A stretch of DNA of 64,000 nt from Diplonema japonicum (lineage: Eukaryota > Protista > Euglenozoa: Diplonemea), in assembly GCA_964019335.1 (NCBI GenBank), contig OZ025648.1, forward strand, positions 930,001 through 994,000. The letters run 5' to 3'. A model generated the notes under the pieces. That model was not told where the DNA came from. It saw nothing but the letters and a program-made list of their open reading frames with translations, and ran no database searches. Position 1 is the stretch's first letter. Each line of letters opens with the position of its first letter. A program made the translations under genes and the position numbers. This document shows positions 117 to 60,357 of the stretch, one piece after another.

Positions 117-1751
117 ATGGAAGTGCTGTTATTAGCGATGCTTGTTGTAGGGGTGTCCGCTGAGGACGCGTGTTGGGAGGAAAAGAAAAATATGTACATG
201 TCGTGTTTCGCCGCGGATGACGACACCCAAGGGAGCTTGGACGAGATGCAGAAGAAGTGCATTGATCTGGAAGACGCTTGCTTGGGTGTGACCTGCTCGA
301 AAGAACAAAAGTGCAGCATGAGACACCACCGCAGGGAGGGCTGTGAGGGAGGCAAGTTCTTAGACGAATCGAAGGTGGAGGAGACCACGTACGTGAAGGT
401 CTGCAAAGTCAACGAGCACAAGTGGGACATATACCCCCACAAAGTATGTCATTATGTCAAAAACCCTTAAACCAAAACTAAAACCAGTACATCCCATGCT
501 ACGCCAAAGATGACCAGGAAGTAGGTGAACTTCTTGAGAGGAAGATCCGTTGCTCTGAGATGGGCGATGAATGCGTGGGTGTGACATGCGGCTCGAAGGA
601 CGGTGGCACCACCACCTTCAACTGCACCGTCCGCGACCACACAGCAGGCTGCAAGGGTGGTCTTGCCGACCCCCTCGCTGACTCGGAGGATGAGGTCTCG
701 TTCGTCATGGTATGTTGAAACAACCAAAAAAAAAATTATATTTCTTAGGACCCCATTGTGTTCCCCACCACCATACCCGCCACTAACGCACCTCCTATTG
801 GCGAGTCCTGCCGTTTTGAGGTTCACGACAAGTCCTCCTTCACCTGCAACCCTCCCGATGTTAACGCCAAGAGGATGACCCTAAAGGAGGCGCAGCAGCA
901 GTGTGTTACCATGAAGGACCCTCAGCAAGGGGGGTTTTGCAACGGTGTTGAGTGCACATCATGGGATGGCGAGCTTGAGACATGCCTCCCGCACATGCAC
1001 TGCGTTGCGGAGGGTCAGCAGATGCTGAAGGTCAGCACAAGCGTGGTCCACATTAAGAAGTGTTCCGACGGGAAATTTTGCACCGACCCGTGCAACGCCA
1101 AGGAAGAGTTCAAAAACCACGTATGCGAGAACGACTGCGACTGTGGAGGCGTCAGGTACTGCTCTGAGTCTGGGTACTGCAAAAACCCCACGGGTCTCTC
1201 ACCATTCGAGGAGCTGTGCATCACGGACCATGATTGCATCTTCGAGAAGCACACAAACAAGTACATGAAGTGTGAAGCCTCCGCTTCCACTGGTAAGGAC
1301 AAGATGACTCTTGAAGAGGCTCAGAAAGTATGCAAAGAGATGAAAGGCCTCTGCGCTGCCGTCACTTGCGTAAAGAATGAGTGTTCTCTGCGTAACCACA
1401 TGTTGGACACGTGTAACGAGCCGCATGGTCTTTTCTTCAACCAAGGTGAGGACACCTATCTGAAATGCTGTGGACCTGAGAAGGAGAAGCGGTGCCCTGG
1501 AGGAACTAGCAGCGGGTCCAGCAATGGCCACACGGGTTTTTTGGTTTTCTTGGTGATTTGTCTCATTGCTGGTGTGGCTGTGCTTGCCTACTGGAACCGC
1601 CAGATGGCCAAGGACTACATAGCCCCAAACACCTTTAATGCTGTTCCTCAGGACGAGGAGGTGTGTACTTTTTTTTTTTTCTCACTTCCACAAAATATGA
1701 CAGGCTGACAACAACTGGGTGATTGATGACACTAAGGAAGACGACGAGTAG
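117..1751 (+). CDS. Cys-rich type I membrane protein with four PAN/apple-like repeats (exons 117-443, 488-709, 749-1660, 1704-1751)
   Basis: N-terminal signal peptide MEVLLLAMLVVGVSA. Three GT-AG phase-0 introns (444-487, 710-748, 1661-1703) join the fragmented ORFs into one frame. Four repeats of the form Y..C...L.E....C......C.GVTC....C..R.H, then a TM helix FLVFLVICLIAGVAVLAYW and a short acidic tail ending ADNNWVIDDTKEDDE*. Confidence 0.85.
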
Positions 1752-3214
1752 GTAGGGTTATTCTCTCAGAAAAGTTTTTGTCACCCCCCCCCCCCCCTTG
1801 CCCCTCTTCTTTTTTTTTCTTTTCTTTTTGTGTTCTTTCCTTTTATCCGTTGCTTTCTACCCTATCTTCGAATGAGAAAAAAAAAAGAAGAAAAGAGGGA
1901 ACCACCATGCTGTGGCCTCTGGGGGAGGAAAAAGAAAATATTGTGAGCATCACAGAATCCTCAAAGTAAAACGCTGGAAAGAAAAATAGAAAGGGACCAA
2001 AAAAAGGGGGAGGGGTCTAAATGGGTTTTCTAAACAAAAAAAAGAGAAGGGGAAGACGGGCATTTTTTTTTTTTTTTTTTTTTTTTTTTGTTACAAATAT
2101 TTATCTTTCAAAAAATGATTTTATAACTATATGCAACTTGTGCCGAGCAAAAAACTTTCGCAGCTCTTTAAAAAGCGAACAACAAAGACATATAGTCATA
2201 AAGAATTTTTTTTTTTTTTTGTTCTTTCTTCGATATTTCTTGGAGTGAAGTACCATGAAAAAAGAGTGAAAGAACTGCAATATTCATTCAATTCTTTTTT
2301 TTTTTTTTTTTTTTTTTTTTTTTTTTTGCCCTCTTCCCCACCCTCATTTTTTCTTCTTTTTTTTTCCCCTCCTTATATTCCATGTAATTCTAATTCATGA
2401 AAATCCGTGTGAGCGCAGATTTGTTTGTTCTTTGCTTCTTTTTTTTTCCTTTTTTTTCTTCTTCTTTCTTCACGTGCGTGACATAAGGGTACAGAATATT
2501 GCCAAGAGAGAAGAAAAGGGGGGGGGGGGGGGGAAGGCAGTTTAAGTGAAGGAACTGGAAACAAAAAAAAAAAACAAAAAAAAAAAAACAAAAAAAAAGG
2601 GCACCGCAAAACTACCCCTGTAAATTTGCTCCTCGTTTGCGTCTTTTTTTTCTCTTTTTTTTTTCCCTCTTTCTTTTTTTTTTTTTTTTTTTTTTTTTTT
2701 GTATTAAGGCAAGGGTCTAACTCCCTTGAGTATTTAAAATTCACTGGGGGCCAAATTTGTCTCGGGGATTAAGCCCTTATTTTAACCTCCCGAAATACAT
2801 ACGTTTTCTTCTCGTTCATAGTAGTCAAACTACTTCTTCCGGCACAGAAACAATTAAAAAGAACGAATTCAAAAAATAAAGGCAAAGAAAAAAAGAAGAA
2901 GGAAAAAAAAAAAAAAAGAAGGGAAAGTTTCACTTTTTTTTAGTTTTTTTTTTTCTTTTTTTTTTCTTTTTCTGAATTCTTTTTCTTTCCCAGCCCTTTT
3001 CCCCCCAACCGTGTTTTCATTCCTATTTTTTTTTTCCCTCCATTCTTTCTGTGCCGAGTTTATGCCGTTGTCTCTTTTTTTTTTTTTTTTTTTCCTGACT
3101 TTTCTTTTCCCTTCTTTTCTTTCTGTCCTTTCGTTTTTTCCCCCTCTCTTTTCCCCTAATACCAAAAAAAAAAAAAAGCCGGAAAAAAAAGTAGGGCAAA
3201 AAAAAAAAAAAAAA

Positions 3215-59281: not shown

Positions 59282-59831
59282 TGGATTGTTTGTGTTTTTG
59301 TTGGTTTTTTATTTTTTTATTTTTTATTTTTTTATTTTTTTTTATTATTCCCTCTAGTTTCCACTGGAGACATGATTATGAAATTGGTGAACGCATACCT
59401 TAGAAAAAAAAAAAAAAAAAAAAAAAAAAAAGAGTAGTTTTTTTTTTCCCTCTCTTTTTTTCTTCTTTTTAATTTCTCCCCCTTCCTTCACCTGAATGGT
59501 ATTTTTTTTTCTACTACCCCCTCCCTCCTGTGCCTGAAATGGTAGGCAGAAAGTAGAGCACGAATTTATAACGAGGCTTGTCAATTAAAAATCTATCTAT
59601 TTCTCCCCCCCCCCTTCTATTTCTTTCTTGTATTCCCGATGAATAACACAACCGTATTTTTTTTCTCCCCCCTTTTCCTTTCCCCTCTCTTTTTTCTCCC
59701 CGTAAATTTACACAGTTTTTTATTTTTTTTTTGAAACTTAGTGACAAAAAAAAAAAAAAAAAAAAAAAAAAAAAAAAACCGAAGAAGGGCACGCCTCACA
59801 CACACACACACAAGAAAAAAATAATAGAAAA

Positions 59832-60357
59832 ATGCTTCCAGGTGCTGGTGATGATAATGAGAGTCTATGCCCCTCTCTTACTTTTAAACAGAGGTGTGGG
59901 GGAAAAAAAAAAGAAAAAAGAAAACTACTAATCACAGAATAATTGGGTTCGCCTCTTGTGTGGCATTCGGGTTTTTGATGTCAATTTTTTCGTGGCTGGC
60001 GATGTTCAATAGGGTAATGACAACAACAAAAAAAATCAAACCCCCCAACAGGACTTCGTGCAATTTGGTATTTTCGCATCTCTGGCAAATATAATCTCCT
60101 TGGCTGGAAGTTGTTTCCTCATGGGGCCCAAGAAACAGGTTAGGAAAATGTTTGAAGACAAAAGGCTGGAAGCCACCGTTATCCTCCTCGTCTCCATGAT
60201 ATGGACCCTCATTGCAGCCTTCTGGCTAGAGAGCCCTGCTGTCGTAATCATCATGTGCATCACCCAGTACCTTGCCCTTGTGTGGTACGGCCTTTCATAC
60301 ATCCCCTTCGCACGAGACATAGTGAAGAAGTGCTTCAAGAACCTCATCGGCGCATAG
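59832..60357 (+). CDS. SFT2: SFT2/Got1-family vesicle transport protein (exons 59832-59893, 59938-60013, 60052-60357)
   Basis: Spliced CPSLTFKQR|IIGFASC...FLMGPKKQVRKMFEDKRLEAT...WYGLSYIPFARD matches the SFT2D pattern; introns 59894-59937 and 60014-60051. Confidence 0.92.

Follow-up and report, generated by a model that had tools for sequence, protein, structure and literature searches.

Minimal GT-AG introns with A/C-rich 3′ ends in Diplonema japonicum: length, composition and acceptor choice in a 64-kb stretch of chromosome 1

The genes in a 64,000-nucleotide (nt) stretch of chromosome 1 of Diplonema japonicum (G000:C1:930001-994000, referred to here as the window) are interrupted by very short GT-AG introns, whose size, composition and choice of acceptor are the subject of this analysis. 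The window has a GC content of about 48% and a positive AT skew on the gene strand; nearly all of its long open reading frames (ORFs) lie on the + strand, and an Rfam scan returned a single transfer RNA and nothing else. The gene names proposed from the sequence alone by an initial annotation (RMD1-3, SBF, DHHC, Got1/Sft2 and GNL3) agree with the Pfam matches obtained when each exon was searched separately, the short exons alone giving no Pfam signal for the Got1, SBF or DHHC tails.

The same annotation had placed 18 introns of 38–77 nt in these genes. All 18 lie on the + strand, start with GT, end with AG and have the lengths assigned to them, three of exactly 38 nt included, and each joins two ORFs in compatible phase. 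The donor GTATG, described as typical of the set, is present in 11 of them and replaced by another sequence in the other seven. Independent evidence verifies twelve of the introns: spliced RNA contigs account for six, transcript-derived proteins with 100% identity for five and orthologues for one. The support for the remaining six is the reading frame. Precise absence from the mature messenger RNA is thus documented by RNA contigs or transcript-derived proteins of the species itself for eleven introns, and by orthologues for one. For the RNA comparison, four sequencing runs were matched to positions 24800–30700 of the window (5,901 letters), of which run X8 holds spliced RNA; for the proteins, each exon translation was matched separately to the retrieved sequences, and scripts walked the frames across the introns in search of stops. 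The features are as follows, in window coordinates, with one longer, probable intron added at the end.

444..487, + strand: intron of 44 nt, GTATG to CCAG, A/C-rich; residues 1-109 and 110-183 of protein P0054 are contiguous across it.
710..748, + strand: intron of 39 nt, GTATG to TTAG, between P0054 residues 110-183 and 184-487.
1661..1703, + strand: intron of 43 nt, GTGTG, a T12 run, ending in GACAG, between P0054 residues 184-487 and 488-502.
8189..8233, + strand: candidate intron of 45 nt, GTATA to AACAG; reading frame (32 and 63 open codons).
9575..9612, + strand: candidate intron of 38 nt, GTATG to ACAG; reading frame (35 and 148 open codons), with a strong coding score downstream.
10808..10853, + strand: candidate intron of 46 nt, GTATG to AACAG; reading frame, with an upstream exon of 15 open codons; the weakest of the six.
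25074..25114, + strand: intron of 41 nt, GTATA to AAAAG, C/A-rich; in X8 record 25 the match picks up again at 25115 (position 248 of the record).
27604..27646, + strand: intron of 43 nt, GTGCC to ATAG, with A runs; explicit GT..AG joint in X8.
27739..27790, + strand: intron of 52 nt, GTATG, A30 and a final G; 103 letters (2+92+9) separate 27601 from 27800 in X8 record 27.
28959..28998, + strand: intron of 40 nt, in which a TAG at nt 25 is skipped; explicit joint in X8.
29068..29105, + strand: intron of 38 nt, with T11 and a pyrimidine-rich body; explicit joint in X8.
30412..30458, + strand: intron of 47 nt, in which an AAG at nt 33 is skipped and an AAG at nt 47 is used.
33810..33886, + strand: intron of 77 nt, in which an AG at nt 47 is skipped; the exception already named in the initial annotation.
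39758..39827, + strand: intron of 70 nt, GTATGG, T36, ending in CTTGACAG; exon 1 ends at residue 227 of protein P0007, and exon 2 is residues 228-246.
39887..39926, + strand: intron of 40 nt, GTATGG, A29, CGCAG, phase 2.
57330..57391, + strand: candidate intron of 62 nt, starting GTGTG, with A37 and CAG; reading frame.
59894..59937, + strand: candidate intron of 44 nt, GTGTG to CTACTAATCACAG; reading frame (49 and 51 open codons).
60014..60051, + strand: candidate intron of 38 nt, GTAAT to CAACAG; reading frame.
33972..34367, + strand: probable intron of 396 nt in the GNL3 gene, phase 1, GTATG to CCACAG, absent from the initial annotation.

Two transcript-derived proteins, both 100% identical to the window, fix five of these junctions. 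P0054 (502 residues) equals the translations of exons 117-443, 488-709, 749-1660 and 1704-1748 placed end to end, and P0007 (285 residues) equals those of the DHHC gene, including a codon split by the intron at 39887-39926, where the joined TGG gives W247 between exon 2 (residues 228-246) and exon 3 (residues 248-285). In three of the introns covered by RNA (25074-25114, 27739-27790 and 30412-30458) the support is arithmetic on X8 record coordinates, each case fitting exact removal; at 30412-30458, for example, the 11 letters that separate 30411 from 30470 in record 29 are those of 30459-30469. Pfam matches run up to or across two of them, the RMD1-3 profile covering positions 119-143 in the exon before 27739-27790 and continuing from position 146 in the exon behind it, and the SBF profile covering positions 2-158 in the exon upstream of 30412-30458.

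In the GNL3 gene, orthologues from other diplonemid transcriptomes (P0001 and P0003) read TTKQRAK/VTKKVSRFKREARR across 33810-33886, where the slash marks the junction. Past 33972 the orthologues continue with RKEKDPALSVPNSW, resuming at 34368, and the exon restarts exactly at R/KEKDPALSVPNSW; the coding score per codon is 0.026 inside 33972-34367 and 0.26 downstream, and the last 110 nt of the interval are AG-free and A/C-rich. These features suggest that 33972-34367 is probably an intron. Among the six candidates supported by the frame, 60014-60051 lies just before a Got1/Sft2 match (profile positions 28-110) that begins at residue 3 of the downstream exon, which leaves about 27 profile positions for an upstream exon of 25 residues, whereas 57330-57391 also has an open frame when left unspliced (53 codons), but with a long lysine run.

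Two other ways of finding introns were tried, with limited success. A home-made dynamic-programming gene finder (codon log-odds, two settings) missed or misplaced most of the RNA-verified introns and bridged intergenic DNA, and it was dropped because codon bias is too weak here. A method that pairs ORFs was of use at high coding scores only and wrongly called an intron at 28307-28358, an interval that an X8 RNA contig reads through.

As had been described from the sequence, the part of the intron that leads up to the acceptor is rich in A and C instead of holding a polypyrimidine tract; it is also nearly free of G. In a working set of 52 introns, which was partly picked using the first-AG rule discussed below and is used for composition only, the last 20 nt contain 0.49 A, 0.28 C, 0.18 T and 0.05 G, and by this composition no polypyrimidine tract precedes the acceptor. 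The same composition is found in 23 verified introns (over both sets, A 0.49–0.50, C 0.27–0.28, T 0.17–0.18, G 0.05–0.06), all of which have such a tract except one on chromosome 2 (110469-110509), which is T-rich. The nearly G-free stretch starts at about nt 29–30 and runs to the acceptor, often as a pure A run. A purine tract at the place where textbook spliceosomes expect pyrimidines is a real oddity.

GT..AG ends are present in all 18 introns of the initial set and in all 23 verified ones. The donor reads G/GTATG, with GTATG in 37/52 introns of the working set and G as the last exon base in 36/52, and the acceptor follows an extended motif (C)ACAG/G, with A at −4 in 81% and C at −3 in 69%. 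The acceptor triplet is CAG in 36, TAG in nine and AAG in seven of the 52, GAG being absent. A shared branch-point word, which had also been reported missing, is indeed absent from the working set, YTRAY occurring in 8/52 introns, no more often than in shuffled sequences. The search for enriched words in intron bodies returned nothing besides clusters of G in the 5′ third, GGGG being the only strongly enriched word; many poly(A) introns, such as 30412-30458, 33810-33886 and 57330-57391, contain a block rich in G that separates GTATG from the A run.

As for the machinery, U2 small nuclear RNA (snRNA) has eleven matches in the genome, ten of them over the family cut-off, and GUAGUA is intact in the aligned copy (L022:1501-1693). 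A gene for the RNA of the signal recognition particle lies 775 nt downstream of this copy, on the same strand (L022:2468-2772). The best U2AF65-like gene, at G000:C19:431190-434139, is divergent, reaching 100.6 bits against a family cut-off of 310.

The minimum of 38 nt proposed for these introns is true of the 18 only. A search of the window for introns shorter than 38 nt gave no convincing candidate, whereas introns of 30–36 nt verified by comparison of paralogues occur on chromosome 2, where frame-based scans of 200 kb (G000:C2:100001-300000) found many GTATG introns of 33–36 nt. Two tandem paralogues there have five intron positions in common, with lengths of 35/34, 33/38, 36/30, 34/35 and 41/36 nt; exon sequence is conserved between the two, intron sequence has diverged, and the frame stays free of stops across the five introns. 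In the whole genome (62.5 Mb, 132 contigs), the pattern GGTATG-N(3-33)-H10-ACAGG, where H is any base but G, has 700 matches, against 27 for the reversed pattern used as control. This pattern admits lengths of 22–52 nt, and in the first 100 of the 700 matches, for which lengths were tabulated, there is one of 22 nt, none of 23–29 nt and a sharp rise from 30 nt, with a maximum of 51 nt, a mode of 35 nt and a median of 37 nt, 56% being shorter than 38 nt. A hard lower length limit therefore exists, and it lies at 30 nt. Median lengths are 40 nt in the working set and 43 nt in the 18 introns of the window. The introns of the window (38–77 nt) are often filled with poly(A), and those of the chromosome 2 stretch are mostly of 30–36 nt and CA-rich, without an A run.

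The second part of the proposed rule held that splicing goes to whichever AG comes first past a set distance from the donor, nearer AGs being skipped. The count behind it, 17 of 18 introns, is reproduced at a threshold of 34 nt, and it is far from what composition alone would give, since shuffling the intron interiors left a mean of 11.1 introns obeying the rule and none of 5000 shuffles reached 17. Nearer AGs are skipped as described, for example the TAG at nt 25 of 28959-28998 and the AAG at nt 33 of 30412-30458. Internal AGs are spread evenly over nt 6–28 and then nearly cease: past nt 33, one AG is observed in the 18 introns, against 6.9 expected from local composition (Poisson P = 0.008) and 14.8 expected from the AG frequency of the window, and internal AGs are absent from the 8 nt next to the acceptors. 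In 29 independent junctions between high-scoring ORFs, the AG predicted by the rule restores the frame in 19–20, against one third by chance (P = 4e-4). The exclusion of AG between about nt 30 and the acceptor is thus significant.

These observations, together with the sharp length floor, are what would be expected if the spliceosome measured from the donor: introns would have a minimum length of about 38 nt, scanning would begin near nt 33 and take the first AG, and neither a tract nor a branch signal would be needed. However, the floor stands at 30 nt instead of 38, and used lengths of 30–33 nt overlap the positions of skipped AGs, at nt 33 in 30412-30458 and nt 47 in 33810-33886. Long introns break the rule as well: beyond its threshold, the 77-nt intron skips one AG and the probable 396-nt intron skips 13, including a pyrimidine tract and CAG at nt 123. 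No single threshold fits all cases, the best one (29–30 nt) explaining 20 of the 23 verified introns and the one originally proposed 19. Given the AGs skipped in the introns at 30412, 33810 and 33972, and with introns of 30–33 nt being common, donor distance does not appear to be what selects the acceptor, and measurement from the donor is an improbable mechanism that, as a strict rule, is already contradicted. What remains of the rule is half of it: the existence of a floor and a strong first-AG tendency stand, whereas the number and the point of anchoring were wrong. A 3′-anchored, AG-free tract fits every case.

The preference for A in this tract has to be set against the second type of acceptor present in the genome, that of the spliced leader.

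29746..29747, + strand: spliced-leader trans-splice acceptor AG of the SBF/SLC10-like gene; an X8 contig has the 16 foreign letters GTTTCTGTACTTTATT before 29747.

The sequence GTTTCTGTACTTTATT is the 3′ end of a euglenozoan-type spliced leader, and occurs 231 times in the genome, against none in the control. A T10/pyrimidine tract lies 30–65 nt upstream of this acceptor, and the last 25 nt before it are CA-rich, like the end of a cis intron. A second stretch of this kind may lie at 8366-8409, where GTATG, a 30-nt T-rich tract and GAG precede an ORF (8410-8973) with weak similarity to the MuDR transposase DNA-binding domain, which looks like a separate gene. A search for a transcript-derived protein that would make 8366-8409 a cis intron found none, and the interval is more likely the leader-acceptor region of that separate gene than a T-rich cis intron.

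Upstream of 62 predicted start codons, T reaches 0.33–0.39 at −120 to −40, against 0.18 at cis 3′ ends, where A stands at 0.49. On the sense strand, runs of at least 8 A or T occur in an A:T ratio of 43:49 in intergenic DNA and of 17:4 in introns (Fisher P = 0.007). In the whole genome, the pattern GGTATG..A10..AGG has 596 matches (control 118) and its T10 version 101 (control 27), so that A runs outnumber T runs about 6:1 in GTATG mini-introns, and about one in seven of the homopolymer-filled ones carries a T run. The A preference is therefore real and specific to introns, but it is statistical and not exclusive. It had been suggested that pyrimidine tracts are kept free to mark trans-splice acceptors, and this does not hold as stated, since verified cis introns contain T36 (39758-39827), T12 (1661-1703) and T11 (29068-29105).

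An excess of A could also be a neutral by-product, if homopolymer slippage fills the introns, selection removes only G (and hence AG), and the bias towards A reflects a mutational strand bias of transcribed DNA. Long runs of A and of T are common in all non-coding DNA of this genome, and the AT skew of the window is positive on the gene strand, both of which agree with such an origin. However, plain strand bias does not account for the A excess in introns, because A and T runs are balanced in intergenic DNA but not in introns, and upstream of start codons it is T that exceeds A. We regard a purely neutral origin as unlikely.

A somewhat better, though still tentative, case can be made for the A or A/C tract as a positive signal, read by a retuned or additional factor (the divergent U2AF65 or a poly(A)-binding protein) and forming one half of a code in which A marks cis and U marks leader acceptors. 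The 6:1 ratio of A to T runs and the opposite compositions of cis 3′ ends and gene-upstream regions argue for it, as do the pyrimidine tract upstream of the only leader acceptor with RNA support, the probable 396-nt intron, which bypasses a pyrimidine tract with CAG and uses an A/C tract with CAG, and the low score of the best U2AF65-like gene. Moreover, cis introns and outrons have one C-rich tract in common in Euglena gracilis, so that a code of this kind would be specific to this lineage. On the other hand, the T runs in verified cis introns do not fit, many chromosome 2 introns are CA-rich only, and the last 25 nt before the leader acceptor resemble a cis 3′ end; in addition, the binding of the factor is a prediction and the leader side is represented by a single site.

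A further question is that of descent from mobile elements. The conserved 3′ end of a dispersed element of the genome reads GACATTTAAGGGTACCTGCG/GTATGTGGCAGGACGCCT followed by an A run, and a 17-mer of it is found in 579 copies, against none in the control. The sequence resembles a retroelement tail of the poly(A) type, with a perfect donor word, GTATG, inside it; examples lie in L029-L034 at about position 1501, and a degenerate copy lies at 38905-38950 of the window. The introns could in principle be introner-like copies, or extremely 5′-truncated retroelement tails starting at GTATG: the 579-copy element ends in GCG/GTATGTGGCAGGACGCCT and an A run, and several matches to the A-run pattern are such tails. 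Nevertheless, the element extends upstream of GTATG in 6/6 inspected copies and the G before it is missing in only nine copies. Its word is found in 0/18 introns, and the word search in the 52 introns returned no common repeated body of the kind that introners or transposons would leave, only the clusters of G. Descent from a mobile element is accordingly very unlikely, the least probable of the explanations considered here.

The reading that we favour, with a probability of about 0.72, is that the D. japonicum spliceosome works here at or close to its lower size limit on ordinary GT-AG introns of the U2 type, and that the choice of acceptor is anchored on the 3′ side. Normally, the first AG past the G-free stretch is used. 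The branch adenosine would be drawn from the many A residues of this stretch, the branch site being degenerate and lying inside the tract, in the presence of a U2 snRNA that is still canonical (GUAGUA), and in the second step splicing would go to the first AG that follows the branch by a few nucleotides. Competing AGs are expected to be cleared from this interval by purifying selection, which would give rise to the AG-exclusion zone. In minimal introns, a rule anchored in this way would mimic a choice of the first AG beyond about 30 nt from the donor, while longer introns could tolerate upstream AGs, as a rule set by the 3′ end and not by the donor would allow. A may be favoured over U in the tract because, in Euglenozoa, spliced-leader addition and polyadenylation are signalled by a U tract with an AG behind it, and an A run would be a handy filler, since no AG can arise within it and the first G ends it.

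Several points weigh against this reading or limit it. A simple steric model would permit use of the AAG at nt 33 of 30412-30458, which is nevertheless passed over. The location of the branch is a prediction, and trans-splice acceptors with RNA support amount to one. The larger intron sets come from 264 kb and from motif-restricted genome counts, and the counts of the A-run pattern are inflated by the tails of the 579-copy retroelement. The support for the 33972-34367 interval as an intron comes from orthologues and coding score, and use of its CAG at nt 123 would keep the frame, 91 open codons following, so that an alternative isoform is possible; against this alternative, the stretch that would be retained codes at one tenth of the score of the gene.

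Avoidance of confusion with leader acceptors is plausible as a selective explanation of the A preference. A more far-reaching proposal would be that cis 3′ splice sites are chosen without dependence on a pyrimidine tract, a degenerate branch site with any spacer free of G behind it being enough, and that the preference for A over U evolved to keep cis acceptors distinct from spliced-leader and polyadenylation sites. This would amount to a lineage-specific acceptor code, possibly read by a retuned U2AF65, and we consider it a doubtful but possible outcome.

The core observation, the A-rich mini-introns of D. japonicum, was already published in 2025. The text of that study (Thakur et al., RNA 2025, PMC12621601) describes 10,131 RNA-supported introns of this species, 98.3% of them GT-AG, with a median length of 41 nt and a (G)/GTATG donor. 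It names A as the most frequent base where a pyrimidine tract would stand, speaks of 'atypical poly(A) tracts', finds YTRAY in 13.9% of introns, and reports that U2AF1/2 and the snRNAs are present. The introns analysed here agree with those of the same species in that text in their GT-AG ends, (G)/GTATG donor, similar median and predominance of A before CAG. A lower length limit, an analysis of AG exclusion or of the first AG, an extended (C)ACAG motif and a comparison with leader acceptors were not found in PMC12621601, its supplements aside, and neither was the idea of distinct cis and trans acceptors.

The additions made here are the 30-nt floor, the (C)ACAG motif, a measured AG-exclusion zone, the tolerance of U runs in cis, and counter-examples to donor distance. 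They narrow the question to how an organism with trans-splicing separates internal acceptors from leader acceptors.

An AG-exclusion zone, with scanning for the first AG downstream of the branch point, was reportedly described for canonical splicing by Smith and colleagues in 1989 and 1993. The D. japonicum introns are like that zone in that AGs are scarce from the presumed branch region to the acceptor, the next AG is used, and AGs farther upstream are ignored. They differ from it in that the zone is A/C-rich, or even a pure A run, and in minimal introns fills everything past about nt 30. Selection against spurious AGs is also reported, in PMC10946897, for the short introns of Drosophila.

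Minimal introns form distinct size classes in several other eukaryotes, of about 15–30 nt in ciliates, 18–21 nt in the nucleomorphs of chlorarachniophytes and about 35–40 nt in fission yeast. D. japonicum resembles these organisms in its sharp, species-specific lower limit with the mode just above it, and differs from them in the values (a floor of 30 nt and a mode of about 35 nt) and in the coexistence with spliced-leader trans-splicing.

Closer relatives offer a further comparison. In Euglena gracilis (PMC11170887), a C-rich tract is common to conventional introns and outrons, and the acceptor is CAG. Both species are euglenozoans in which cis-splicing exists beside spliced-leader trans-splicing, and in both the tract is unusual in its composition and the acceptor is CAG; unlike E. 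gracilis, D. japonicum has an A-rich cis tract and gene-upstream regions that are T-rich on average. If true, a cis/trans acceptor code would thus be a novelty of the lineage relative to E. gracilis. The non-conventional introns of euglenids and hemistasiid diplonemids belong to the same phylum and are also short, but they are without GT-AG and their ends pair with each other, whereas the D. japonicum introns are GT-AG with a U1/U6-type donor.

Other features of the window lie apart from the introns. An assembly gap at 6304-6503 is more than 1.6 kb from the nearest of the 18 introns and has no bearing on them; its flanks, 5811-6302 and 6504-6854, are both open frames and in register as written, although the gap length is an estimate only. 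To its left, 5835-6302 codes for the N-terminal portion of a fatty-acid desaturase, matching positions 7-102 of the 253 in the Pfam profile, and the right flank gave no family match. At 25660-26909, DNA runs X4 and X6 carry an allele with 32 other letters in place of 1.25 kb, which is a haplotype insertion/deletion polymorphism. Finally, an intronless tubulin gene lies at 11342-12682; it has at least 16 copies in the genome at 95% identity or more, some of them in tandem arrays on contig 58 with a spacing of 5–10 kb.

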